DNA of 64,000 nt from the NCBI GenBank assembly GCA_905178155.1, contig CAJINV010000005.1, positions 3,230,833 through 3,294,832 on the forward strand. The letters are read 5' to 3'. This document shows, piece by piece, positions 11,777-27,463 of this stretch. Numbering within the stretch: the stretch's first letter is position 1; every line of letters begins with the position of its first letter. The notes beneath the pieces were generated by a model, which saw only the letters and a program-made list of their open reading frames with translations, made no database searches and was not told the DNA's origin. The position numbers and the translations under genes are program-made. The DNA is from Amoebophrya sp. A120. Taxonomy: Eukaryota; Protista; Dinoflagellata.

Positions 11777-12891
11777 CCGGAAAAGGGCGAGCAAATCGGT
11801 GATGGAGCAGGTGTCGCTGGTGTTGAGTTGTCCTCGGCCGCCTCGTCCGCCGATGTGCAAGCGTCGTCTGGCGGGGGACATGCGGAGCAAGACTTTGCTG
11901 TGACCATTGCGGGCGACCAACGTTCTGACGTTGCGGGCGTGGCTCTGGGTGAAGGTGGTCAGCCCGAGAAGACGAAAAAAACGGCGTTTCTGGCGAAGAC
12001 GGGCACGGGCGTCGTGCGGCAGAAGAAAAAGTTGCTGGCCGGCGGCGCCCAGGGTACTTGCTTTTCTTTGGCAACTTTCCTTACAACAAAGATGAAATTC
12101 GTCATTTAGCAGCCAGGCTCCCTTGATGTTCTGTTGAATGATGGTCGTTTGAGTTAGTATGACCAGCTCTTACTAGAGAGAGGGGATAATGCTCGTCTTT
12201 CGAAAGCAGCTGCTGAGAACGAGAAGTAGAAGCTGGTACAAGCGGAAACGTGATCTAGGAAATATAGAGCATTTTATCTATGTCGCATTGATGTTTTACA
12301 GGCTGCGCGTGGTTTGCTGATCCTGTGGAGCGTCTCGACTGGACACATTTTCGGACAAACGCCTGTGAGCTCGTTGCGAATATCGTAGCGGATTCCGGTA
12401 GTGGAGACGCGGCGACCGCACCCGCAGACGCAATAAAGCCGAAGGCGCAGGCCATCAAGACCAAGGCCAGAACGATGCTGGGAGAAGTTTGGAGAGACAC
12501 TGGAACTTGGCAATCTTTGCAGCACCAGGGCTGCTTCGGCACATCGCTCGGGCAAAAACTCATTCGACTGTCCACACTGTCCGAGTCCTTCTACAACAAC
12601 TCGTCTTGGCGAGCAGGGTTGTGGCACGTGCGAGACGTTGACTTCGCCGCGGCTTCCTTGGCGTGTCAAATTGTCAATAGCGAAGATGAGAAGCGGGGCT
12701 GTGGCGGTGTTGATCAAACTGGTCCTGAAGGTGACAAGGTGCTCTTTGGTGGGGGCTCATCTGATGATACTTCTCACGAAAATAGAATGCAAGCAGCCAA
12801 AGAAGTCTGCAAATCCCACAAGAATTTTGGTCTACAGTCACACGCCAGGTCAATCTGGCGCCGGTTATTTAAGTACTTAGTACCCAACTGA
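11363..12891 (+). CDS. Hypothetical Lys/Ala-rich protein, paralog 1; exons 11363-12053 and 12302-12891
   Basis: GT-AG intron 12054-12301 joins ORF 11363 in frame to ORF 12325. The N-terminal ~135 aa are shared with the gene at 25832. Confidence 0.55.
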
Positions 12892-13808
12892 AACTGGTCA
12901 GGGACAAAACCAGTACCCTAGTCAACCCTCTGGAGAAGATGACGAATAAGGAAGGGAAGTGACTGCCCGGTAAAAATACAAGATGCCATGCGATAGGAAA
13001 ATATGATTCTTTTACCGTTTGTTTTGACTTACGCCTATATCGAAGCAGCTGATAGATATTATAGCTGTTGCTAGTTGCCGTGGTTGCCATGAAAATGAAT
13101 GACACTGCTCCTCCACAATTTGCGCCTCAGGCGCAGCTCCGTTTCGTTTTCGGTCACAAATAAACCAGGAGCACGACGAAGCTAGGCCGGTAGCATCGTG
13201 GAAGATGGCGAATTAAGTAATGAAAATGAATACCAATACTCAGCTTTCTTTTGTGATTTTAATAAAGTTTTAGCTTATCTTATGATTCAGCACCTTCAAA
13301 TGCAATTGCATTTCTAACTCACTGCTCAAAAACAAATTTGAACAATCTGTTTTGTACGAAGTAGAAGTCGGTCTACAGTTCCTCTTGTCTCTAGTCTCCA
13401 CAGCAGTTTTTTCACCAGCACCAACGAACAGTTACTTTATTTTGTGGACGCCATCTCGGCCACGTCCACGTCCAGACGCGGACTGACATTTTGCGCCACA
13501 GCAACGGATTTGACAGTTTGATTTGATGATACAAGACATACGGATACGGAAGCACACGGACACCAGAGGGAGCAGCTAAGCGCAAGCGCTCTATCTGAGG
13601 TGCCGCGTTACTTTCCTTTCTGTAGGTTTTATCCGAAGATGAACACGGATGAAAATTTCTTGGCTTCGCAGCAGAAGAGCAATGAATGGTACAACAACTC
13701 ACTTAGTTGCGATATTCAGGAGTCGAAAATAGGAAGTTGCAAGTGGTGGCTTTTCATCATCTTTGATTTTCTGTTCATCCTCCTGCTGCCAATCAGAAAT
13801 ACTCACTT

Positions 13809-14257
13809 TGTCCGCCCACCTGTACATTTATTTTATTCAGTCACTTTGCACGCATACATTGTTTCATCATGCTGGGGATCCGCATCTGCCCATTCATTTC
13901 TATCCATCCGAGTAGAAAAGGGATTCAATTCATCCAGCGAACAAGATTTGAATTTAGCTCGGGCTCGCGCGTGCGAGTTACGCCATGGCAGCGGTTTTAT
14001 TTTTGAGAAGCCCTTGCACAGTGGTGTCAACACAAACGCGCATGTCCAAAGTAGTCCAACGTGTCCACGTTCAAGATGTGAGTCCAGCCTCCTTTCTTGG
14101 AGTTAGTGGTCGCTAAATGCTACTTCGAAAAACCCACAGCGCGGGCCGCGCACGCGGCCCGGGACCCTAGTGACCCCGCTAAAAGCAGTTATCGAGAACT
14201 CGTTCTCGTATTGCTCAAAACCTTTCCTCACACCCGTGCATAGCACGCACGGCGGCT
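13809..14257 (-). repeat. Split direct repeat B2 (3' terminus of the element)
   Basis: 449 bp with about 5 substitutions versus 17011-17459. AATAAA occurs on the - strand about 20-30 nt from the end. Confidence 0.95.
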
Positions 14258-14371
14258 GTGTGGGGTGGTGTGTGTTTTTCGGGTCAGAGACCTCAGGACT
14301 TCTCGAAAGTTTATTACCGTAGCTCGTGCTACTTCCTGCTAGTTCAGATTTCTCTGGTTAGCAGGTAGCGG

Positions 14372-16747
14372 CTAGTCCGCCTCACGAATTTGCAGTAGTT
14401 GTTTCATCGGCATGTTTGTCACCGGCCCTGCGAATTCCCGCTGCCAGTTTATTAGCGGCGGCTTATCCATGGTCGGTTGCCACATGTCGATGGCCTGCTG
14501 CAGCTTGTCGTACCTTGAAAAGGGGTCCGCGCAGTTCAGCTCGCTCTTCACGTACTCGCACCACGAGCGGCAGCTGTATTCGTGGCACCACATCGCTGCC
14601 CGCGTACATATGTTCGTTGTCAGCAGCGAGTTGGCCGAGCATTTCACCGCGGCGCACAGCTCGCCGGTGTTGTCCACTCGGGTGAACGTTACCGAGTGGC
14701 TGAGCTCGTGTCGCCACGTCAGCTGCGCCACCCGGATCATCATCGCCTCGTAGTGTTCGATTGTGAGCGGGTGTTTGTAGTGCTCGCTCACGTCCGGGAA
14801 GTCGTACGTGATTGCCCGGATCTGGCCTGTTCCGGTTATTAGCAGCGCCCCGCCGCATGGTCCGCCCGCCTTGGAGCCGTTGCTGCTGGCGTCCAGGTGC
14901 AGCCAGTTTGTTTTCCCGTCGTGCACCTGTGGTTTTAGCACCAGGGGCTTCTGGTTTTTCAGCACTACCTGCACGCCGCGCAGGAGCACGGCCAGCTTGC
15001 GGCGCCGCGCTTTGTCCAGCACCCAGGCGTCGAGCCGCTCGTCCGATCCCGTCCAGTCATATATTCCGCGGAGTATTTCATTGCCTGCGTGGTAGGCGGA
15101 GTTGCAGACGATGAAGTTGGCTATGCCCAGCACGCGCTGCAGGTCCTTCATTGTCAGGCCTTGGCCCGCTTCGCACTTCTCGACGCAATGTTTCGTTTGT
15201 GTTAACGCCCTGTTCATGGAGTCCGCCGTCGGTTCAACTGTGATTTTGTTCAGCTCTCTTCTCCAGAAGTAGTTGATGCCCAGCGCTTTGATGGGGTTGT
15301 GCTCACAGCTGTTTTGCGACGCTCCGGGCTTGTCGCTTATCACCAGCCCCAGCGTGCGCGCCATCTGGCGGTAGAGTTCTCGGCTAAGCATCAGCCCTTC
15401 TCGGTCCAGGGCCATGTAGTAGCCGTCGTCGATGTATATCACCGCTACCGCGTAGAAGTGGATCAAAATCGACATGCACAGCTCCGCGACCCTGCACCAC
15501 GATGGAACGCTGTGCAGGTTGCCCATGTTCAGCACCAGCGCCAAGAAGTACTGGTAGGACATGGTGTGGTTTGACCACGCTGCTACCGGGTTGTGCTCCG
15601 GTATCTCACACCCGACCTGGTGGTAGGCGCCTTTGTAGTCCTCGCTGCCCAGTTCCACCAGCGGTTGTTTCGCGGTGTTGTGCGGTGTCTTTTTTATCGA
15701 GTTGCGCGCGTAGCGCGCTTCCTTTTTCACCCTGCTCATGTAGTCGCGTCCCGTCTTTTCGCCAAAGAAGGAGTCGCTGTGCGTCTGCTTTCTGTTGCGG
15801 AATTGTTCCAGGTGCTGCTGCATTTGCTCATAGACCTCCTTTTTCGAGGTGGTTGCGGGCATTCTGCAGCAGGCTTTTTCCTGTCCGACCGGTGCCGTCA
15901 TGGCCTGCGTCAGTTCCTGTATGACGCGGGTTCCGTAGAGCTGCAGTTTCTCCAGCAGCACCGAGCGCATGTTCTTCCTGCGCTCGTCCACGATTGGTCG
16001 TATTTTCCGAATTTCCTCTTTCGGAAATATATACGCGGGCACGCAGTGGAGCTGGTGCTCACTGATTTCCATGTTATGCCCGCGTTTGACCATCTGCATT
16101 TGTTCTTCTAGCACCGCGTCCAGTAGCTTGTCTGAGAACCCCTTAGGCTTCAGTTTGCGCAGCGTCACTCCGGCCTCGAAGAGCGCGTCGATCTGTTCTT
16201 GTTCCAGCGGTTGCTTGGTTTCGTCGAGGCCCCACACGTTGGACTCGGTCTGGTTCCCGATGGTGGGGAAGCCCTTCAAGATCTGCTCTGGCAGCTTCTT
16301 GTCCGGGTGCCCGATCATCGCAGTCAAACGCCGCATCGCCGGTACGTTCCGCACCTGCCCGTTCTCGCTGACCAGCACGCGTTGCAGGTGCTTGGGCGCG
16401 TGTTCGCGTACCAGCTGGAGTGCCTCGTTCTTGGTCTCCAGCTCGATCTCCTTCAGTATTTCGATTCCTCTTCGCAGGTGGGCTTTCCACCTGCCGGGGT
16501 GCTGTTTACAGAGCTTTGCGTTTCTGTAAAGCTCCTCCCTGATGGTCTTGACCGCTCGGTCCTCTGCGATGCAGGCCTGTACGTAGCAGATGGCTTCGTG
16601 CGCCTGCACCTTGAGCTCCTCTGCCTCCGTCCAGTTCGCCGACGCGTACTGCATCTGTGCGGCCACCGGCGCTTCCGGTGGCGGTAGCTGCAGCTCTGCC
16701 GAGCTGTAGCCGAACCCACCATGCTTAGCGCGCTTAGCACGCGGCAT
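14372..16747 (-). CDS. Reverse transcriptase-RNase H (DIRS/Ngaro/PAT type), 791 aa from the first ATG after A2
   Basis: RT motifs IRPIVD, EDYKGAYHQV, LNMGNLHS, YIDD and LGI; RNase H motifs LDAS, IEHYE, VDN and NCADPFSR. The frame is open further upstream into repeat A2 (to 16915). Confidence 0.92.
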   Translation of the reverse strand: MPRAKRAKHGGFGYSSAELQLPPPEAPVAAQMQYASANWTEAEELKVQAHEAICYVQACIAEDRAVKTIREELYRNAKLCKQHPGRWKAHLRRGIEILKEIELETKNEALQLVREHAPKHLQRVLVSENGQVRNVPAMRRLTAMIGHPDKKLPEQILKGFPTIGNQTESNVWGLDETKQPLEQEQIDALFEAGVTLRKLKPKGFSDKLLDAVLEEQMQMVKRGHNMEISEHQLHCVPAYIFPKEEIRKIRPIVDERRKNMRSVLLEKLQLYGTRVIQELTQAMTAPVGQEKACCRMPATTSKKEVYEQMQQHLEQFRNRKQTHSDSFFGEKTGRDYMSRVKKEARYARNSIKKTPHNTAKQPLVELGSEDYKGAYHQVGCEIPEHNPVAAWSNHTMSYQYFLALVLNMGNLHSVPSWCRVAELCMSILIHFYAVAVIYIDDGYYMALDREGLMLSRELYRQMARTLGLVISDKPGASQNSCEHNPIKALGINYFWRRELNKITVEPTADSMNRALTQTKHCVEKCEAGQGLTMKDLQRVLGIANFIVCNSAYHAGNEILRGIYDWTGSDERLDAWVLDKARRRKLAVLLRGVQVVLKNQKPLVLKPQVHDGKTNWLHLDASSNGSKAGGPCGGALLITGTGQIRAITYDFPDVSEHYKHPLTIEHYEAMMIRVAQLTWRHELSHSVTFTRVDNTGELCAAVKCSANSLLTTNICTRAAMWCHEYSCRSWCEYVKSELNCADPFSRYDKLQQAIDMWQPTMDKPPLINWQREFAGPVTNMPMKQLLQIREAD

Positions 16748-16774
16748 CTGGGTGGCAGTTGGGGTGGTGGTGGG

Positions 16775-17010
16775 ACAAACTTCACGATGTTGCCGCGCCG
16801 CAACGTTCGCGAGGTTCCCCGAGCGGAAACACCAACTAACCAACAGCAGTGCGTTCATGTGGACATACGCGTTTGCGTTCGTTGTGCGTGCAAATATCGA
16901 TCGATCGAATCTCACTGATTGCTATAAACCCGATTGCTACTGGGATGGAATGCACTTATTCGAATTGCATTACAGACTATACCTGGCGGACATTGGCTCG
17001 TGGCGCAGGC
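16775..17010 (-). repeat. Split direct repeat A2 (internal)
   Basis: 236 bp with about 2 substitutions versus 24881-25116. Confidence 0.95.
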
Positions 17011-17459
17011 TGTCCGCCCACCTGTACATTTATTTTATTCAGTTACTTTGCACGCATACATTGTTTCATCATGCTGGGGATCCGCATCTGCCCATTCATT
17101 TCTATCCATCCGAGTAGAAAAGGGAATCAATTCATCCAGCGAACAAGATTTGAATTCAGCTCGGGCTCGCGCGTGCGAGTTACGCCATGGCAGCGGTTTT
17201 ATTTTTGAGAAGCCCTTGCACAGTGGTGTCAACACAAACGCGCATGTCCAAAGTAGTCCAACGTGTCCACGTTCAAGATGTGAGCCCAGCCTCCTTTCTT
17301 GGAGTTAGTGGTCGCTAAACGCTACTTCGAAAAACCCACAGCGCGGGCCGCGCACGCGGCCCGGGACCCTAGTGACCCCGCTAAAAGCAGTTATCGAGAA
17401 CTCGTTCTCGTATTGCTCAAAACCTTTCCTCACACCCGTGCATAGCACGCACGGCGGCT
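17011..17459 (-). repeat. Split direct repeat B1 (internal)
   Basis: Copy of 13809-14257; begins 27 nt after the YR stop codon. Confidence 0.95.
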
Positions 17460-17485
17460 TTCGCCATACGTGCCCGAAGCTCTGC

Positions 17486-19459
17486 TCACTGCATATCCTG
17501 GTCGTCGGCCTCCAGCTGCAGGTCTGCTTCTTTCGCCACACGTTTCCTGACGACTTTGTCGCCGAGCGTGCGCTTGCGCGGTGGAATTCGGAGGTGCTTC
17601 TTGTTGTTCACACCCTTGTGCTTTATTCCATCCACTTCGCAGTCACATGCCGGGCATATCTGCGTGTTGTGGATGTAGAAGATGCCTTGGTGGCAGTACA
17701 TCTCGTCTTTCTGCGCCTTGCGTAGCACCGCCGCGGGTTTCCCCTTGTTCGGGATTAGTGCTCCCGCTTTGTGTTTCTTCTGCACCACCGGCTGTTTCGG
17801 AGGCTGCTTTACTGCCGGTTTTTTCTCCTGCCCCGCGGCGTTGTCGTCCTCTTTCTGAACCAGGTTTCTGTAAGCAGGTGGGAATGCTCCCGGCACTTTT
17901 ACCCGCGGTTTCACGTCCAGCAGCTTCTTTTCCAGCGCCGTTCGCGGGTCCGGCCCCGGCTTCGGTGCGAGGAGCTTGTTTTTCTTGTTTGGCGGTGACA
18001 GCATCTCCATGTCCTCCGCTGTCAAGTCCGTTTTTTGTGCCACCTGCTTTTTCATCTCCCATAGCCTCTTCGTTATGCCCGGGCACTGCTCCTCCAGTTC
18101 GGAGTCGTTTTCCGTAAGGCAGTCATCGATGCTGTTTTTTAGCAGTGGCGCCACGTTACGGCTGTAGAGGTGCCCCTTGGGCGGTCGTTCGTCGCCTTGC
18201 AGCGCGTGCGGCCTGATGGACGAGAGCACCGGGCAGACAGCATCTGGAATGCTATCTTTCCACTTTTCGTAGTCGGCGCAGTAGCGGTTGTACGTGGCTA
18301 ATTTTGTCCATCCGCGATCCATCATCCAGCTTGTCAAGTCGAATCTTGCGGCGTCGCTGGTCATCGCCCATCTGGCGTACAACGCCGCCGCCCTGCGTGG
18401 CGACTGCTGCGTCCAGCCGAGCCGACGCAGCAACGCGCGGCTTTCCGATGCTCTCGTGATTGTCTCGCTGCCGTTTCCCCACATTTGTTTCGCGATCGGC
18501 AGGTCCAGTCGCGCGTGTTCCGGGTTGTGCAGGAGGCACCAGGTGCGGTTGATCTGCTGTTTCTCCCCTGGCGGTCGCACCGCCAGGCCTCCGCCGAGGT
18601 GAGGTGGTTTTTGTAGTGGCACTGCATCGCGCAGCGCCATCCGCTCCCCGGTCTGCATGAAGCAGTTGCATCCGATCATGATGTCCCTGCCCTGGAATTT
18701 TCGCACTTTATCTTTGCCGACCGTCACGCAGAGGACTTCCTGGCCGTTGTGGACGCGGCGTTTCACGTCCTCCTCGTGTATCTCGTAGATGCTGCTGAAG
18801 CGCAGTCCGGTTTGGAGTGCGAAGCACATCTGCGTGAACTGGTTCGGATACAGCAGCTGCGTGACTGCCGGTCGCAGAATTGCTGGTTTGGCTTTGTGCG
18901 CTTCATCGCACGTCGCCGCGCGCTGCACGTCCCGCCGTGCAGCCACCAGCTCCAGCATCTCGTATCCCCACGCCGGCGCGAGGACGTGCCGCGTACTGCC
19001 ATCCGGTCCTTTCGGGGGTCGGATGCACCGCAGTATCACCTGTCCCAGTATGCCGTTCGGGTCCTTCTGCCCCGACCTGGCGAGTGTGAGGCCGTACAAC
19101 CTCAAGTGTTCCACTTCGATCGCACCCGGGTATACCGGCGGGAATCTCTTTGCACACCATGCTAGGAACTGGTGGTAGTATTGTTCCCGTTTTTGTAGTG
19201 TTCCCGCGGCGTTGGCCAGCAGCCCCAGCTGGTAATCCTCCTCCTGCTGCAGTTCCATCGCCGCCTGGGCCTGTAGCAGGCCGGAGTACATCCCCGCCAT
19301 GGTGGTCGCTGCTTGGTGCCCCACCGCGTACGTGGTTAGGAAGCCGGCTGTTACCACTGCTACGTTCCTCGTCGCCGTCGGTCCCGCTCGTTGGCCCGCT
19401 AGCACCACGAGGAGTAACGCAAACGCATGTACGACGTGACCTAGCATTTCATCTTGCAC
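17486..19459 (-). CDS. Tyrosine recombinase
   Basis: Box I TGLRFSSI, catalytic Lys region GKDK, box II QSPRRAAA (cf. HSxRxGAA), then RGW...TYNRY with the catalytic Tyr. Confidence 0.85.
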   Translation of the reverse strand: MQDEMLGHVVHAFALLLVVLAGQRAGPTATRNVAVVTAGFLTTYAVGHQAATTMAGMYSGLLQAQAAMELQQEEDYQLGLLANAAGTLQKREQYYHQFLAWCAKRFPPVYPGAIEVEHLRLYGLTLARSGQKDPNGILGQVILRCIRPPKGPDGSTRHVLAPAWGYEMLELVAARRDVQRAATCDEAHKAKPAILRPAVTQLLYPNQFTQMCFALQTGLRFSSIYEIHEEDVKRRVHNGQEVLCVTVGKDKVRKFQGRDIMIGCNCFMQTGERMALRDAVPLQKPPHLGGGLAVRPPGEKQQINRTWCLLHNPEHARLDLPIAKQMWGNGSETITRASESRALLRRLGWTQQSPRRAAALYARWAMTSDAARFDLTSWMMDRGWTKLATYNRYCADYEKWKDSIPDAVCPVLSSIRPHALQGDERPPKGHLYSRNVAPLLKNSIDDCLTENDSELEEQCPGITKRLWEMKKQVAQKTDLTAEDMEMLSPPNKKNKLLAPKPGPDPRTALEKKLLDVKPRVKVPGAFPPAYRNLVQKEDDNAAGQEKKPAVKQPPKQPVVQKKHKAGALIPNKGKPAAVLRKAQKDEMYCHQGIFYIHNTQICPACDCEVDGIKHKGVNNKKHLRIPPRKRTLGDKVVRKRVAKEADLQLEADDQDMQ

Positions 19460-20101
19460 GCAGCATCAACGATACGACAAGCCGCACAGCGCAGAACCAG
19501 AAGCATTCTCTCTCCGCTCTCTGTTCTGTTCTTCATGTCATATCCGCGCTACATGCGTTTGGTAACAGCCCTACTCGTCTGGACCATTTCGGCGACTCTT
19601 CGGGTGGGTTTACGTGCGCGCGCACGCCCTTTTTTGATACATTTTCCGTTCCGCGAACATCAGCTTGCACCTCGCATTTTTATACTCACTACTCTAGACG
19701 CGGTGCCGGACCAGCATGCCTTCCTTCTTTTTTCCGTTTTTCAAATAGCATGCTATTTCCTTTTCTTTTTTTTTTTTTTTTCACATTAGAAATTCCATAG
19801 TGCCCGTGGGACTTTTCCTTTTACATCTACCTGCGAACCGCAACAGCAACTCTAGAGTAGTAATTTTTAAAAATTTTTTGATGTTTTCCTCCAACTCCTC
19901 TTCATCGATTCCCCGGTGAGTCCTCGTTTTTTGGGGAGTCAAGCTCGACCCTACAGCGGAATTTAGTTGCTATTTCGTTGTTGTCGTCCTGCTGTTTTGT
20001 ATTATTTGTTGCTCTCTAACCCTGTAGTTGCCTACAGGAGGTCGCTTTGCAGCTAATTGTTGTCTTTCCTCGTTTTCGTCAGCTGCTGTTCCCTTCGTTA
20101 T

Positions 20102-22705
20102 TTAGTTGTTTCCGCTCCGGCTCCCGGTGCTGTTCCTGCGGCCGGCACTGGGCGTGGGGTCGCGGAACTGCACTTTCTTTTCCTTGTTTTTCTTACCCGC
20201 TTTGTCCCCCATCCCGTCCGTCTGCCTGCAGTGCGACAGCAACACGTCTTTCCAGGTGACCTCGGTGCAGATCAGGTCTTCGAAGGGCGGGGAGCCTAAA
20301 TCGCGGATGTTGTCCACGTGGTGGAAGCGGCACTTGCCTTCGCCCCGGTTGCAGGCATTGCGTGCCGAATCGCGGCAGAAACAAGAGGGAGTCCCTTGGT
20401 TTGATAACCAGGCGTTTTGTACTGGGCACGGTTGTACATACCCTTGTCCGGTCACCGTCCAGAAGACGTATTTGTTCAGCTTGGTATCCCATTGACCGAG
20501 CTCCTTGCACTTGGTGGCCAGCTTCCGCGAGTAGACCGGGTCTTGCTCGCTGGTGGGTCCCGCACACAGGGCTTCCACAGCCGCTTTCGTGATGGGTTCC
20601 TTTCCAGCCAGCGCTTCCTTCTGGTCCTGGTACCCCTTCTGCGGCTGCGGGTTGAGCGTGATCTGCCCCTTGTTGGGCTTAGGCCGCTTGTCCGTTTTTC
20701 CGCGCTTCGATTCGTGGTTCACTTCCTCGTCCTGCTGCTGTCCCAGGGGGTGCAGTCCCATCTGCTGCTGCTGCTGCTGCAGGTAGTTCAGGTTATCCGG
20801 GTAGTTCGTTCCCCCCACCTGCGTGTTCGTATTGTTCTGGTTTCGCCCACCGCCAGCATGCGGATACAGCGGCAGCAATGTGTGGCCGCCCGCGGAAGTG
20901 TCGTTGTTGTTGTAGCGCTTGTTGGACTTGCGTCCAAAAGCCTGTTTCCGCTGTTCAATCATCTCGACGATCATGTGCAGACCGTGGATCAACTGCGTAG
21001 CCACTTTTGTGGTGTCCGGTTTTTGTTTCATGGTCTGCACGGCCGGCGAGTACCACTGCGAGATCAGAATCTCCGGGCTCACCTTACACAGGTGTACCGC
21101 AACTGGCACTACGTGAAACACCATGTGCGGCATCGTGATCGCATTCATCCGGTGTTTCACTGGTTCTAACATTTCCGCGGCTTCCGCTGGTCCCGTACCG
21201 TCGAGGACAGCAATCGCGAGTTTCGCGATCTCCGCCGTGACCGGAAAACGCGCCGGGTCGCGCACAAAGGTTTCCGTGATGCACACTTCCATGTGCGTGT
21301 CCAGCGGGCTCTGGTCCACCTGCCGTTTGAGCTGTAACAGCGAGGTCACGTTGATTGCTGTTAGCAAATCCCTGTCGAAGTCCGGCGACACTCTCTCGAG
21401 TGTGCGTTTTTGCACTTCCAGCATCACCTGCAGGCACCCCGTGGTCTCGTGGGTCGACAGCCCTTTGCCAGATTTCCAGCCTGCGATGCTGAAGCAGCTG
21501 ACTACGTTGCCGTTCGGGTTGATCAGCGTGTTCTGCGGTTTCGGCAGCGGTGTTGATGCGAGTTGGATGTCGCTCCACACCCCATTATCCCCCGCCAGCG
21601 CCATAGCAATGCGGGCGACCTCGCTTTGTTGTTCCGTACAGGTCTGGAGGAATTTGTGCATAAAGCAATTTGGCTGTTCGTGGATGTATTTCGAAATTTT
21701 TCGCAGCCTGGCAGCCCGATCGGTGTCGTCTTTGCAGCCTTGCAACGCGTTCGAGATGCTCTGGCTGTACATTTTCGATTTCAAGTCGCTGGTGCGGCTT
21801 CCCCAGACCGGCTCGGCCCAGGCGCCCGGCGTGTTCACCCACGGCTTTTTCTTCCACTCCGTCGTTGCTCCTTCGCGGATTCGCTGCGCCGGCGAAGCGC
21901 CGTCCTCATCTGGCATTTCGCCCTGCAAGTTCACCCATCCATAGAGCTCGAAGTACATCCACGGCGAGTGGGGGTTGTCTCCCCGCGCATTGAAGTGTTC
22001 CTCTTCGCCCGTTCGCCATGGTCCCTCTGGCTCCTTGGCGGAGCGGTAGTTGACCGTGTTCGTGGTTTTGTTGGCGGAAACTTCTTCACGCTCGGTTTTC
22101 ACCGCGGCTAAAATTTCCTCTTTCTGCTGCCGCATGGCTCGTGTCAACTGCTGGACGAAGTTCGGGACATTGACGTTTCCGTTGGCATCCCCCTGGAGGG
22201 CTTGGATGAGTGCGCCCATCCCGGCTTCGTTTTCGCTCGCAGAAGATGTCGTTGCCTGTTTCACCTTTGTCATGTCAGATTGTTCCGGCGGCGGCGGCGG
22301 CACGCCCGCCGATCCCCCAGCAAAGGCGATTCCACTGCCCGCTGCTGCGGCGCTGGGGGCGATAGCAATCGTGTTCTTGGTTGTGGTGCTGCTCTGCACC
22401 CCTGCGGTGGTCGTCGTGCCCACGAACAGCTGCTGTCCGTTTGGCACGATGGCAAACGGGGAGGCCGTGTTCTCATTGTTCTGTTCGTCCGGCTGCGTAA
22501 AGCTGCCTCCGAGGCCCTGCTTTTCCGCCTCGGCGCCTGCGCTCACCTCCTGTTGTTCTTCTTCTTTTTCCCGTTCCAGCTGTTGTTCCTCCTCCAGCTT
22601 GCGTTGTTCCTCTCGGAGCTGTTCCACTTTGAGGCGGATTTCCTCTTTTTTGCGTTCGCGCTCAGCCTGCTGTTCCTGGCGCTGCAGTTTTTCTTCCTCC
22701 TCCAG
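20102..22705 (-). CDS. Gag-like ORF, C-terminal part, with a CCCH zinc finger
   Basis: Coiled-coil start, Gln-rich linker and CRDSARNACNRGEGKCRFHH (C-x7-C-x6-C-x3-H). It continues ORF 22662-23990 after a 1-nt frameshift. Confidence 0.7.
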   Translation of the reverse strand: MEEEEKLQRQEQQAERERKKEEIRLKVEQLREEQRKLEEEQQLEREKEEEQQEVSAGAEAEKQGLGGSFTQPDEQNNENTASPFAIVPNGQQLFVGTTTTAGVQSSTTTKNTIAIAPSAAAAGSGIAFAGGSAGVPPPPPEQSDMTKVKQATTSSASENEAGMGALIQALQGDANGNVNVPNFVQQLTRAMRQQKEEILAAVKTEREEVSANKTTNTVNYRSAKEPEGPWRTGEEEHFNARGDNPHSPWMYFELYGWVNLQGEMPDEDGASPAQRIREGATTEWKKKPWVNTPGAWAEPVWGSRTSDLKSKMYSQSISNALQGCKDDTDRAARLRKISKYIHEQPNCFMHKFLQTCTEQQSEVARIAMALAGDNGVWSDIQLASTPLPKPQNTLINPNGNVVSCFSIAGWKSGKGLSTHETTGCLQVMLEVQKRTLERVSPDFDRDLLTAINVTSLLQLKRQVDQSPLDTHMEVCITETFVRDPARFPVTAEIAKLAIAVLDGTGPAEAAEMLEPVKHRMNAITMPHMVFHVVPVAVHLCKVSPEILISQWYSPAVQTMKQKPDTTKVATQLIHGLHMIVEMIEQRKQAFGRKSNKRYNNNDTSAGGHTLLPLYPHAGGGRNQNNTNTQVGGTNYPDNLNYLQQQQQQMGLHPLGQQQDEEVNHESKRGKTDKRPKPNKGQITLNPQPQKGYQDQKEALAGKEPITKAAVEALCAGPTSEQDPVYSRKLATKCKELGQWDTKLNKYVFWTVTGQGYVQPCPVQNAWLSNQGTPSCFCRDSARNACNRGEGKCRFHHVDNIRDLGSPPFEDLICTEVTWKDVLLSHCRQTDGMGDKAGKKNKEKKVQFRDPTPSAGRRNSTGSRSGNN

Positions 22706-23990
22706 TTTTTTCTTGCTTCTCCAGCGCGTCCTCCATTTCCTTTTTCACCATGGCCTCGTGTTCCTCCTGCGTCGGCAGCGTATCCAGCGTGGTGTCTCGC
22801 GGCAGGAGCAGTTTGTAGAGACCATGCTCATCCGGGTACATGTCATTGAGGCCTTTTTCCTCAGGGTCGGCTAGCGACCTGATCTTGTCCATGCCCTGAT
22901 AGACCCGCTCTTTCAGCACGCGCTGCTCCATGTTGAATCGTTCCCGTTCCTTTTCTTTTTCAACGCGGTCTTGTTCCTCTTTTTCCTTTCTGATGCGTTC
23001 TTCCTCCTTCCGCTGCGCTTCCACGGCGTCCGCATCAGCCATTTGCTCAAGCATCTGCCGCTTCGCCTCCAGCTCCGACATCTGCTCTTCCGCCTTCTTT
23101 TTCCCTTCCTCGAGCAGCGACTCCATGGACTGGAGGTTCGACTCCTTGAGGTTAAGGCTTTTCTCGCGCTCCTGGAGTTCTTTTTCCTTCAACTGCTGCA
23201 GTTCCTTCGCGCGCTTCGCTCGCAGTTTTTCCTTTTCCAACCGCGCGAAGTACTCCTCCATGCAGTCGTCTTCCTCGGAGTCGTTTTTGTCGTCTCCGAG
23301 GTCGCCGTCGTTTTTGTAGGTGAAGCACGCGCGGATGCGGACATCCCCTTCGTGGTTCGCCGTGAAGCAGATCGGCCCGTGGAAGCTGGTGTCGGGAACC
23401 TGCTGTGCCTGGTCGACAGCAGTGTCGATCCAGGTCTTCAACAGCTTGTCCTTTTTCATGCTTTTTACATCCGCCTCTTTCTTGACGTCGGCCTCCACCA
23501 GCAGTTTTTTCAGCTGCTTGACGTTGAGGTCACGCAGCAGCACCCAGGTGTCATCCGTGTTCTCGTCCAGCAGCGTGGTTTTGGCGAGACACAGCAGGAT
23601 GCAGAACTTGTGGCGCAGTTTTCCGTTTACCACCCGTCCCGTGATGGTTCCCGTCACCGCCGGGTCGTTCACCGCCGAGCTCTTGTAGTAGTGGACGTCG
23701 TTTTCGCGCGGGAAGGCGAAGTTCGTTTTTCCCTCTCCGAGCTCGTTCACCCGCTGCTCCTGCAGCAGTTCCAGTGCGGCTGTCGTCATGTCGCCGTTTC
23801 CGAAGAGGATGGCTGCACGGTTCACCTGCTGTTTCTTCTCCGCGGTGGCCGCGTTGTACGCCGCGTACCACTTCTCCAGCACTTTCTTCACTCCGCGCGC
23901 AGCAGACAGGTCCGCCAGGCAGAACTGGAACAGTTCCTCCGCGGTCTGCGGCGCCGCGTTGCCGACCGGTCCTTCCGGGAATTTCAACAT
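22662..23990 (-). CDS. Gag-like ORF, N-terminal part (SAP/HeH-like motif plus coiled coil)
   Basis: First ORF of the element; LRDLNVKQLKKLL...KKDKLL motif; E/K/R-rich heptads. Confidence 0.65.
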   Translation of the reverse strand: MLKFPEGPVGNAAPQTAEELFQFCLADLSAARGVKKVLEKWYAAYNAATAEKKQQVNRAAILFGNGDMTTAALELLQEQRVNELGEGKTNFAFPRENDVHYYKSSAVNDPAVTGTITGRVVNGKLRHKFCILLCLAKTTLLDENTDDTWVLLRDLNVKQLKKLLVEADVKKEADVKSMKKDKLLKTWIDTAVDQAQQVPDTSFHGPICFTANHEGDVRIRACFTYKNDGDLGDDKNDSEEDDCMEEYFARLEKEKLRAKRAKELQQLKEKELQEREKSLNLKESNLQSMESLLEEGKKKAEEQMSELEAKRQMLEQMADADAVEAQRKEEERIRKEKEEQDRVEKEKERERFNMEQRVLKERVYQGMDKIRSLADPEEKGLNDMYPDEHGLYKLLLPRDTTLDTLPTQEEHEAMVKKEMEDALEKQEKTGGGRKTAAPGTAG

Positions 23991-24880
23991 GGTTACAGCG
24001 TGGTGGTGTGTGTGCGGTGTTGAGGAAAGGTTTTAGAATTTAGGGTTAGCTTTGCTTGTTCGATGTTGTCTGCTCTTGGACTTTACAAAAACTCTTTGGC
24101 TTCTAGTTCTAGAACTAAGTGAGTTTTTATTCGCGTTTTAAAGTGGGTGTTAATACTCGCTAGAGTAAAAGTTTTTTGGTATCGACTTAACAGTCAGTAC
24201 CTTCGGCCTGCGTTCGGTTGCGATTCAAACAGCTGCTTGTGGTTGGATCTGTGATCTACGTTTTCGCTCTTAGCATGCTCTATCTTCTATTCGTATACGT
24301 ACTCGGTTTCTTCTGTCATGCTCCCTGTCATGCTTGCCCCTGTAATGCTCGGCATTGCCTCAACTGCCTCTATAGTTGTCTTACGTTCGCTATCGAGTTT
24401 CGATCTCGCACGCGCTCTTTCGATTTGATCTGATTTTTGATCGTGCACTTGCGTGCATGCCAACAAGGCATTTCCCACTAAGCTTGCCCAGACGCCCGGT
24501 GCCCGTGCTCAGCACACCGGCGCGTCTCGTCGGCCATTCGGAGTTCCGTGTTTTCCCTGGAGTTCACCATCAGAAGCGGCTCACCCAGAGGGCGCAAGTA
24601 TGGCGTTATGCCGCCATCTAACCCTGGGGCCGAATCTGGCTGTCCCCCGGTGCCACCCGGGTTCCTGTGTTGCCGTTTACGACATGCGTTTGTATTTCCT
24701 GTGTCGGCCCGCTGTCGCGCCGCGGGTGGCCCCCGGCTCACTTTCGTGAGACCGGGTTTGCCATTAAGCGAGCAACGCTTGCCGGCAGCCAGACACACAC
24801 ATCCGCGGGGGACGGCTCGTCCCCCCGATGCCCTCGGTGCCTTCCCCGTGCTGTTAGCGTACAAGCACGAGGAGGCAGGA

Positions 24881-25116
24881 ACAAACTTCACGATGTTGCC
24901 GCGCCGCAACGTTCGCGAGGTTCCCCGAGCGGAAACACCAACTAACCAACAGCAGTGTGTTCATGTGGACATACGCGTTTGCGTTCGTTGTGCGTGCAAA
25001 TATCGATCGATCGAATCTCACTGATTGCTATAAACCCGATTGCTACTGGGATGGAATGCTCTTATTCGAATTGCATTACAGACTATACCTGGCGGACATT
25101 GGCTCGTGGCGCAGGC
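24881..25116 (-). repeat. Split direct repeat A1 (5' terminus of the element)
   Basis: Copy of 16775-17010. Confidence 0.95.
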
Positions 25117-25242
25117 ATCTTCAATTGCGACGAACTAGCTCATCTTTGTCTCTGCAAGGATGATGAAGGAAATTCACATACGAGAAATCTTCTCTCTGCG
25201 TGTTGAGTGCCTCCGCCCGTATCGTCGCTATTCGTGACCCGG

Positions 25243-26254
25243 CTGAACGTGGTATTGTCATTCGGTCTTCAGCTGCATGTTTTGGCTCCTGTCGGTTTGA
25301 CTGCGTTGTGCAGAAAGTGATTCGGGTCCGTGTACGGTTACGTTATATATATTTAACGATATCGGTCTGAGGCTGAGCTGCACGTGCACGCTGGAAAACG
25401 CACCCAGTAAGTATTCATTTCGTTAAGTACTCAAGTTGGCACTCCTTCTCCTTGCCGTCGGTGTGAGCAACGAGTTCGGTTAGGCCACAACTGAAGCCGC
25501 TGGTCGAACGGGGTTCGTGTATGATCGTAAATAGCAAGACTTGCGATTGTTGTGTTTTTGACCGTCTTGCGTCTGAACTGCCGATTAAGTACATTCTTGA
25601 TTTTTGATTTTTCCGACTTGCTCCAGCTCTCATTGATGATTTTGACTATCCTAATCCCTCTCGGTTCACTTCAAGACCTCCTTTCGACTTGTATTTTTTC
25701 TGTGAATTATCCCTACCTACGACAAATCGACCTGCTAAAACGACCCGCCAAACCGCTCCGAGCAACAACGCAAGCAGGACTAAAACCACCTACGTGAAGA
25801 TCTTATCTTGCAATCAATTGCTTCGAACACAATGACGATCGCCATGAGCTGCATGCCGGACACTTCCGCCGCACCTGCTGAGGCGATTTCTTTACAATTC
25901 CAATTTTCGCAGGGCGAGACGCCGGACTTGGCCGCGTCGACGTGTGGCCAAGACCTTGGTCCACCCACGGCAAAGAAGGACGGACCCAAGACGAGCGACA
26001 AACCCGTGCCCACGGAGGTGCACAACTACATGAAGCGCGCCGGCAAGCGCAAGCAGGTGGTAATGCGCCGCTACAAGAAGCTGGAGCTCCGCTACACCTG
26101 TCAGCTGAGGAACAACAAGAAGACCAAGTTGGGGGCCGCCGCCGCGGCCGCCGGGGCGCAGACCCTTGGCTTTGTGTCGGTCATGGTTGATGGCGTGCAG
26201 GCGGTACGTCCCTCGGCGCCCCAAAACTTGCTGAAGCAGAAGGCGGCGCGCCTG
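25243..26254 (+). repeat. ~1-kb direct repeat, copy 2
   Basis: Aligns to 10783-11776. Confidence 0.85.
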
Positions 26255-27463
26255 GAGGAGCAGCAGCATCGTGTGGGAGGTGGGGCCGCGGCTGCTGCTG
26301 ACGCAATGTCCGCGAATGTTTCGTCCGACGAGGCAGCCATGGCTGATGGACATGTTGACGGAAACTTTTCTGTGGATGATGCGGGCGAGGGACGATCTGA
26401 CGCCACGGCCTCCCCGGCAGAAGATGCTGACCCCGGCTAGAAAAATACTGCATTTCTCGCGAAAACGGAAACGCGTGTGCAGAAGAAGAAATCGTGGGAA
26501 TGGTTTCGCCGCATCATGCCGAAGAAGTCGTGGTTCACGACCCGCTTCCGTACGCCTTTTCTTCAACTCTTTAGTTCGTCTCAACAAAGAACCATTTTTT
26601 GTGTTTCCGTCTACTGTACTCGAACTATGAGTATGTGGAAAAGTGGAGAATGAACAGCGGCCGTCTATCTCTATCATCAAAGTAAATCCGACACGAGGAG
26701 AATTCTGTACTAGTTTCCGTGCTGCATAAGTGTGCATCCGAATACTTGTTCCTATTACTTACAATCCAGATTGCAGTGGCGCCACGTGGAAGGATTTCCG
26801 TGAGGGCGTTTGCGACAAATTATGCCGTGACCAGACCGCCACCGCAGTCCATGCCTGCCAGCGGATGCCGTTTTTGTGGCTCCGTAGATCAAGATGCATG
26901 TCGATGATCGACTTTTTCACTTGTAGTCATGTTATATTATTTATCTGGTAGTGTCAGTGTGGTCCTGCCTGCCGACGGCGGGAAAAACACATCTGGTACC
27001 GACGTACAGACAAGGCTGGTAAGTTCTCTGATTGCCGGGACGATAAACGAGGGCGCCTCGGACTTAAAAGTTGGATACTACCTATTGTAAATTCGTGGAA
27101 AAAAAGCAGCATTGATTCCGAGTGACATTACTTCGTTGGCAGTACGACTTCGTTTGGCTATTTTCATTTGTAAAGGAAGTTGCAGGCAACTTGGTTGAAG
27201 CGGTAGCAAGTGTTAAGTTCGGGCAACCGGAACCGTCTGAGTCACCACCAGAACCAGCACAGGTCGCACAGGAGTTTCGAGCTTCCCACAACGAACAAAA
27301 CGACTTGGCTACCAACAAGGAACCGGGCCTGCCACATCGCAGCGCGTCACTTTCTAATTATATTCATATCTATTATGATGTTTGTACACGACCAAAACAC
27401 ACAAAGGCTGAGCACAAGCGCCCAGCTCGTGTATACCTAGGTACCGAGTTCATCCGTACTTAA
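25832..27463 (+). CDS. Hypothetical protein, paralog 2 (first exon to ~26440; downstream exons uncertain)
   Basis: MTIAMSCMP... matches the gene at 11363. The first ORF stops at 26440. Possible later exons at ~26770-26920 (WKDFREGVC, cf. WTHFRTNAC) and ~27176-27463. Confidence 0.4.

Follow-up and report, generated by a model that had tools for sequence, protein, structure and literature searches.

VIPER and TATE elements of kinetoplastids carry their genes in the order gag-like, tyrosine recombinase (YR), reverse transcriptase/RNase H (RT/RH); their repeats are of the split direct type, and a methyltransferase is absent (PMC6681497). In the PAT-like elements Pat1 (nematode form) and kangaroo (Volvox), which also have split direct repeats, the B1A2 junction lies between coding regions and the last ORF is located between A2 and B2 (PMC4157794). 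Ngaro elements are arranged as A1-[gag, RT/RH, YR]-B1A2B2, with separate ORFs and no methyltransferase (PMC8547959, PMC4157794). Among dinoflagellates, SymbioDIRS-Dnmt3 of Symbiodinium is a DIRS-like element, of which one form has a shuffled order of the integrase and Pol ORFs; its RT is a poor fit to the Pfam seed alignment (PMC5890265).

The element described here is on the minus strand of the window, that is, the whole 64,000-nt stretch of Amoebophrya sp. A120 DNA that was analysed. It spans 11,308 nt (~11.3 kb; 25116-13809) in the order A1, ORF1, ORF2, ORF3, B1, A2, ORF4, B2 (Table 1). With a probability of about 0.8, it is a single autonomous retrotransposon of the tyrosine-recombinase type, with split direct repeats of the form A1...B1A2...B2. 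This class had been assigned in the preliminary description, and it is supported by the repeats and by the identities of ORF3 and ORF4. The repeats were found where they had been placed, with two mismatches between the A copies and six between the B copies, and B1 and A2 meet with 0 nt between them. Besides A and B, 12000-27000 contains no repeat, direct or inverted, that reaches 40 nt; the unique parts of the element consist of four long minus-strand ORFs. It should be mentioned that an 8-nt inverted repeat around the B|A junction was significant in this family (family 1); the corresponding 5-nt repeats of families 2 and 3 were not significant, and an argument from covariation was dropped.

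Table 1. Features of the element (window coordinates)
Feature	Position	Strand	Remarks
A1, 5' terminal repeat	24881..25116	-	236 nt; 99.2% identity to A2
ORF1	22662..23990	-	442 aa; many charged residues
ORF2	20102..22627	-	841 aa; gag-like by position
CCCH zinc knuckle, C-x7-C-x6-C-x3-H	20318..20377	-	in ORF2, near C-terminus
ORF3, tyrosine recombinase (YR)	17486..19459	-	first ATG 19300; catalytic Tyr393 at 18281-18283
B1, internal copy of 3' repeat	17011..17459	-	449 nt; 98.7% identity to B2
A2, internal copy of 5' repeat	16775..17010	-	236 nt; adjoins B1
ORF4, RT/RNase H	14372..16747	-	791 aa; YIDD at 15425-15436
B2, 3' terminal repeat	13809..14257	-	449 nt; AATAAAATAAA near end

Pfam scans of all ORFs gave no significant match at E thresholds up to 10, and sequence searches of the PDB with single proteins or small profiles were blank for every ORF, ORF3 and ORF4 included. 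Therefore, the labels YR and RT, which had been given from motifs, needed testing. The AlphaFold2 model of ORF3 has a mean pLDDT of 84.7, and its best Foldseek matches are Tre and Cre (E 9e-6, ~350 columns). A profile of 50 sequences from the YR family, the only one to reach Cre, matches Cre (E 1e-4) and XerD. The residues R, K, R, W, and Y are conserved and have a spacing like that of Cre, and in the H-x-x-R motif the His is replaced by Gln in families 1 and 2. A word-indexed search for homologues returned one near-identical copy of ORF3 and nothing else, and no ORF of the element matched an integrase in Pfam. ORF3 is thus identified as a tyrosine recombinase of the Cre type, in place of a DDE integrase.

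For ORF4, the best Foldseek match is the RT of cauliflower mosaic virus (E 7.5e-5), followed by the RTs of foamy virus, HIV, and Ty3, with a model that is weak over the fingers and palm (mean pLDDT 54.7). The profile of the ORF4 lineage matches ORFs of the same genome that bear Pfam RVT_1 (E 1e-47 to 1e-24), and the neighbours of ORF4 in the Atlas bear RVT_1 and RT_RNaseH. Neither YIDD nor the D-E-D-D motifs of RNase H vary in this lineage, and the word-indexed search gave six matches. ORF4 is thus identified as an RT/RNase H of the LTR-retroelement type. From the RNase H motifs to the end of ORF4 there are approximately 30 residues, which leave no space for a methyltransferase domain; no such domain was found after the RNase H by Pfam, and no ORF matched a cytosine methyltransferase (DNMT) in Pfam. 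Both motif-based labels were borne out in this way. Standard domain searches missed both enzymes entirely, which means that routine annotation would call the element "unclassified".

ORF1 is open in both the C5 (window) and C11 copies; it has no significant Pfam match and no counterpart in family 2. The open frame of ORF2 begins at 22744, in the +1 frame relative to ORF1, and the two frames overlap. ORF2 aligns with the first ORF of family 2 (21% identity over 523 columns, E 4e-18), and the CCCH knuckle is common to both families. The word-indexed search found no database homologue of ORF2, and Pfam and the Atlas gave weak hints of zf-CCCH. Position and zinc knuckle suggest that ORF2 is gag-like.

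A second copy of family 1, on contig C11, has the same 11,308 nt with no indels and 79 substitutions. In an independent public contig (JACKZZ010005587.1), ORF2-YR-B1A2-RT-B2 is present and 92% identical. Family 2, at C1 and C4, has no DNA similarity to family 1 and shows the same layout, A1-gag-YR-B1A2-RT-B2, with an RT 44% identical to that of family 1. Family 3 copies keep the order YR, B, RT, B, and no A1 was found in them. Since the layout recurs in the C11 copy, in the independent public contig, and in a second family, it is the normal form of the family rather than an accident. The position of YR upstream of RT/RH with a B-A junction between them, as first described from the window, is thus confirmed. 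The suggestion that the copies are young is likewise supported.

This recurrence bears on the reading that the structure was created by the assembly, or that two elements without relation to each other landed head to tail by chance. Short-read contigs break at the repeats and none of those displayed crosses B1-A2, and the third copy of family 1 sits among runs of N. An apparent 816-nt insert joining YR and RT in that copy proved to be a run of N, and the copy is uninformative on structure. However, the C11 copy has the layout base for base, and an artefact or a chance junction would have to be repeated in the public contig and in a family without DNA similarity; this reading is hardly credible and is in effect refuted by these three sequences.

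With RT/RNase H, YR, split direct repeats, and no target-site duplication, the element belongs to the order DIRS in the broad sense. Comparison with DIRS, Ngaro, PAT, and VIPER was made by published layout. The element shares with VIPER/TATE the gag-like-YR-RT/RH order, the split direct repeats, and the lack of a methyltransferase. However, B1, A2, and B2 of VIPER are all 3' of RT/RH, whereas B1A2 of the element lies between YR and RT/RH, and the hosts are unrelated. A junction between coding regions is also found in Pat1 and kangaroo; in those it is the YR that is enclosed (inverted in kangaroo) and pol has a methyltransferase, whereas here RT/RH is enclosed and no methyltransferase is present. 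Ngaro is similar in its split direct repeats, its lack of a methyltransferase, and its separate ORFs for gag-like, RT/RH, and YR, and differs in both gene order and junction position. SymbioDIRS-Dnmt3 has a cytosine methyltransferase in Pol and is drawn as A-coding-B-A-B, whereas in the element no DNMT was found and the junction is internal.

Novelty had been overstated in the preliminary description, since the gag-YR-RT order (VIPER, some Symbiodinium DIRS) and repeats between ORFs (Pat1, kangaroo) have each been published (PMC6681497, PMC4157794, PMC5890265). What still looks new is their combination and the clade: gene order together with junction position, and the Amoebophrya/marine clade, appear to be undescribed. 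This is a third independent case of an internal repeat junction moved between genes, here enclosing RT/RNase H. Such a shift lends support to the view, already in print, that the structural traits of these elements have changed again and again and serve poorly for classifying them.

Neither the C5 nor the C11 copy is flanked by a target-site duplication. In the family 2 copy at C1, GAA is present at each end and once at the internal junction, a pattern as described for DIRS elements (PMC7192593). These two features together point to insertion of the recombinase type. Copies of family 2 are approximately 90% identical to each other, whereas the A pairs and the B pairs within a copy are 98-100% identical; in family 1, nearly all repeat differences are private to a single repeat copy. 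Near-identity within copies that differ by 10% argues that the repeats are renewed at transposition. Under the model published for elements with split direct repeats, reverse transcription would act on one RNA that extends from A1 to B2, the internal B1-A2 junction would template the restoration and joining of the ends, and the recombinase would insert the end-joined form at a new site. Relative to its place in Ngaro or VIPER, the internal junction has shifted upstream of the RT/RNase H gene, leaving this gene between A2 and B2. The near-identical young copies offer a usable subject for testing this replication model, which is still unproven.

The one point in favour of a bipartite element is its geometry: each half is bounded by a full A and a full B, and circle closure would give two identical B-A junctions. 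From the complete ends it had been proposed that the A...B halves might replicate or circularise separately as a segmented retroelement; they might also insert separately, and one possible route would be resolution of the two junctions by the recombinase. In its full form, the halves would be functional modules with A2 and B1 as internal promoter and terminator, and the circle would be resolved into ~8.1 kb and 3.2 kb, giving a two-segment retroelement. However, A and B in the genome are confined to the three copies of the element, and no solo A-RT-B, solo A-gag-YR-B, solo A-B, or permuted copy was found there, an absence of limited weight because the copy number is very low. RT and YR matches in families 1, 2, and 3 always occur as pairs, the arrangement is the same in every resolved copy of family 1 or 2 and in the public contig, and copies of family 2 that are 10% apart keep the joint layout. 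The DNA read depth is equal across the halves (106 over the RT part and 111 over the YR part; reads over 6,000 nt). Because of this equal depth and the lack of separate or permuted pieces, the element behaves as one unit; segmentation is very unlikely, both in general and in the two-segment form.

A single element might still be expressed as two transcription units. An mRNA from A1 (ORF1, ORF2, YR) would end in B1, a subgenomic RT/RNase H mRNA from A2 would end in B2, and read-through of B1 would give the genomic RNA. This arrangement would account for translation of the far-downstream ORF4, and it is consistent with A at the start and B at the end of each half, with an ATG of ORF4 (16747) only 28 nt after A2, and with AATAAAATAAA, which lies 18-28 nt upstream of the B end. 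However, AAUAAA is not known to be an established signal in this group, and the tight spacing is not conserved (the RT ATG of family 2 is ~500 nt after A2). Three RNA runs yielded two read pairs in total, both joining A1 to the ORF1 leader and none joining A2 to the RT leader, a depth much too low to settle the point. Trans-splicing of a spliced leader onto a polycistronic RNA would be another route, but the window contained no sequence resembling DinoSL. Two transcription units are a tentative possibility, somewhat doubtful at present, within the single-element reading.

The same genome also contains YR retroelements of canonical order. They share homologous RT/RH and YR with the element (profile matches at E 1e-47 to 1e-24 for RT and 1e-26 to 1e-9 for YR), and their YR lies downstream of RT, unlike in the element. 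In the RT tree, a branch with support of 92/94 separates them from the element. A gene model of Amoebophrya AT5.2 has YR followed by RT. The element belongs to a lineage of Amoebophrya and marine metagenomes, which extends the tyrosine-recombinase retrotransposons by a distinct clade in Syndiniales parasites and marine metagenomes. The metagenomic relatives are P0003-P0006. A partial YR is also present at C4:9.02 Mb.

The element, on the minus strand of the window, is a real, young retrotransposon carrying a tyrosine recombinase (YR). Within 12000-27000, the repeat finder detected exactly two direct-repeat families, A and B, and no inverted repeats. B1 abuts A2 directly, without a gap, and four long minus-strand ORFs occupy the unique parts of the element, giving the order A1, ORF1, ORF2, ORF3, B1, A2, ORF4, B2. 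G+C is higher in the element than in its flanks, and A is strongly in excess on the sense strand. The repeat finder, the alignments and the ORF mapping showed the coordinates in the preliminary description to be right to the base; its view of the copy as young is also borne out, the element's own repeats being near-identical.

Repeats and open reading frames of the element
Feature	Position	Strand	Remarks
A repeat	25116-24881 and 17010-16775	-	236 nt, 2 mismatches; pairwise and four-way alignments
B repeat	17459-17011 and 14257-13809	-	449 nt, 6 mismatches; pairwise and four-way alignments
ORF1	23990-22662	-	
ORF2	22627-20102	-	
ORF3	19459-17486	-	
ORF4	ATG 16747, end 14372	-	

None of ORF1-ORF4 had a significant Pfam match, even at E 10, and PDB sequence searches were also empty. 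This means that the labels "YR" and "RT" (reverse transcriptase), assigned on first reading, had been untested. ORF3 was aligned with its paralogues from the same genome, and the profile was run against 1.8 billion representative proteins, yielding 106 relatives. A 50-sequence ORF3 profile matched Cre (E 1.1e-4) and XerD (4e-3). The AlphaFold2 model of ORF3 had a mean pLDDT of 84.7; its best Foldseek matches were Tre and Cre (E 9e-6, ~350 columns), followed by integron integrase, Xer, Tn1549 and lambda integrases. In the 50-sequence alignment, R220, K251, W384 and Y393 are invariant, and R355 and R356 are nearly invariant. The spacing from W to Y is Cre-like, and Gln replaces His in the H-x-x-R motif of family 1 (the element and its copies) and the related family 2. 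The fold match, the reach of the profile and the conserved residues uphold the YR label.

The RT label for ORF4 also held. A seven-sequence alignment shows no variation in the RT motifs, among them IYIDD, or in the acidic residues of RNase H (RH). The structure model was weak over the fingers and palm (mean pLDDT 54.7); despite this poor model, the best Foldseek match was the cauliflower mosaic virus RT (E 7.5e-5), followed by the foamy virus, HIV, XMRV and Ty3 RTs. The ORF4 lineage profile matched other ORFs of the same genome at E 1e-47 to 1e-24, and six of the eight such ORFs scanned had a Pfam RVT_1 match at E 1e-6 to 4e-5, just below the curated cut-off. Furthermore, RVT_1 and RT_RNaseH are present in Atlas neighbours of ORF4. 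ORF4 ends shortly past RNase H, so that there is no space for a methyltransferase domain.

ORF2 had no database relatives in the homologue search. Its homologue in family 2 is the first ORF (E 4e-18), and a C-x7-C-x5/6-C-x3-H knuckle is common to both. From its position and this knuckle, ORF2 seems to be gag-like. It should be mentioned that the ORF2 open frame begins 80 nt upstream of the ORF1 stop, in the +1 frame (window 22665-22744), and that its first ~117 codons contain no ATG. ORF1 and ORF2 may be joined by a frameshift or a small intron.

The layout is the normal form of the family. The copy on contig C11 aligns across the whole element, with the same 11,308 nt, no indels and 79 substitutions. 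The third family 1 copy, at C5:5.72 Mb, is embedded in runs of N and gives no information on structure. ORF2, YR, B1A2, RT and B2 are also present, at 92% identity, in JACKZZ010005587.1, a public contig of a different assembly, whose own B copies match each other at 99.3%. The contig opens (its first 76 nt) with 68 nt of the element in inverted orientation, probably a fold-back produced during assembly at the end of the contig. Family 2, on C1 and C4, has the same order (A1, gag-like ORF, YR, B1A2, RT, B2); its RT is 44% identical to that of family 1, and the families have no DNA similarity. In family 3 (RT 30% identical to family 1), the order is YR, a 488-nt direct repeat, RT and the repeat again, in copies on C10, C16 and C2; no A1 was found within 20 kb. 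In each of these three copies, RT/RH is divided between two ORFs, of ~440 and 480-500 aa. In addition, a gene model of Amoebophrya sp. AT5.2 contains the C-terminal half of the YR, followed by RT/RH. AT5.2 and A25 are the source of the nearest named relatives of the element's proteins.

The preliminary description had proposed that the two halves, each with complete A and B ends, might replicate or circularise separately as a segmented retroelement. This is not supported. In the genome search (an assembly of 115,520,608 bases), A and B were confined to three family 1 loci, and neither solo A-B, solo halves (0 A-gag-YR-B, 0 A-RT-B) nor permuted copies were found. RT and YR matches are paired in every family. 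In contigs from a DNA run of this organism, word depth was 106 for the RT part and 111 for the YR part, compared with 44 in the flank; therefore, neither half is in excess. The published split-direct-repeat model requires repeats to be identical at insertion (PMC6681497). Two family 2 copies are ~90% alike, yet the A pair and the B pair within each copy are 98-100% identical, and the repeat differences in family 1 are nearly all private to a single repeat copy; the repeats were therefore identical when the element inserted. Taken with the genome search and the depth, this indicates that A1-to-B2 moves as a whole unit.

Of three RNA runs labelled as the same species, one yielded four reads and the remaining two yielded none. 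The four reads sit on A, and their loose ends run on into the leader after A1; they show only some RNA from A1 towards ORF1. In a candidate two-promoter reading, somewhat less likely than not, A2 would act as promoter and B1 as terminator.

In more distant RT-bearing elements of the genome, the YR is downstream of the RT, which is the usual order. The RT tree, which is unrooted, used columns of the C-terminal RT and RNase H; the N-terminal RT half was left out because in family 3 it is split into a second ORF, and the RT/RH pieces of family 3 were kept unjoined. One side holds the three YR-first families, the AT5.2 proteins and four metagenomic proteins, and the other the elements of canonical order (support of the separating branch, 92/94). 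The clade of the element is missed by domain libraries. Many other YR retroelements of the genome, on many contigs, have the usual RT-then-YR order, and their RVT_1 scores are just below the Pfam cut-off; these would likewise be under-annotated. DIRS-like elements of Symbiodinium occur in two forms with shuffled integrase/Pol ORF order, and their RT aligns poorly to the Pfam seed (PMC5890265).

VIPER has the order gag-like, YR and RT/RH, with A1 at the 5' end and B1, A2 and B2 jointly at the 3' end (PMC6681497). Its gene order is like that of the element, but its internal repeats are at the 3' end, whereas those of the element lie between YR and RT/RH. In nematode-form Pat1 and in kangaroo, the internal repeats lie between pol and YR; a gene between A2 and B2 was therefore already known, and such structural traits arose repeatedly (PMC4157794). 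The displaced internal junction is common to the element and Pat1. The element, which is probably still competent, thus has a gene order like that of VIPER together with an internal junction displaced as in Pat1. The published A120 assembly (115.5 Mb, introner-rich) was described with retroelements covered only in general terms and most repeats unclassified (PMC7789003). Our search of the literature, with Repbase and Dfam outside its scope, found no paper on Amoebophrya YR retroelements or on this exact layout.

No target-site duplication was found at the family 1 copies. In DIRS elements, the junction trinucleotide is found at both ends (PMC7192593). The family 2 copy on C1 matches this pattern: each end bears GAA, and the trinucleotide occurs once at the internal junction. 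In the C4 copy, the trinucleotides are GAG and GAA, and they lie within a GAG repeat. The four insertion sites that could be resolved are all rich in purines.

Between the C5 (window) and C11 copies, none of 1,532 nt differ in two non-coding spacers (23991-24880, 19460-20101), where ~11 differences were expected; divergence in the ORFs and repeats is 0.75-1.1%. In the 642-nt spacer between ORF2 and ORF3, 16 changes are private to the third copy. Such a mosaic pattern of divergence is suggestive of recombination or gene conversion among the copies. Changed ORF codons between C5 and C11 comprise 52 non-synonymous and 12 synonymous, and the commonest change is A-to-G on the sense strand (18 of 38 changes derived in C11). 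Neutral decay of the copies is the probable explanation, the alternative being editing or miscopying of the template.

CAGGTR occurs in the last ~20 nt of B in all three families (C1 and C10 junctions; window 16971-17050), and CAGGTA or AAGGTA 27-33 nt into A. Apart from these motifs, the families have no DNA similarity in common. The family 1 B/A junction is bracketed by an 8-nt inverted repeat, GGCGGACA / TGTCCGCC (17 of 5000 shuffles). These features may serve as a signal for recombination or replication.
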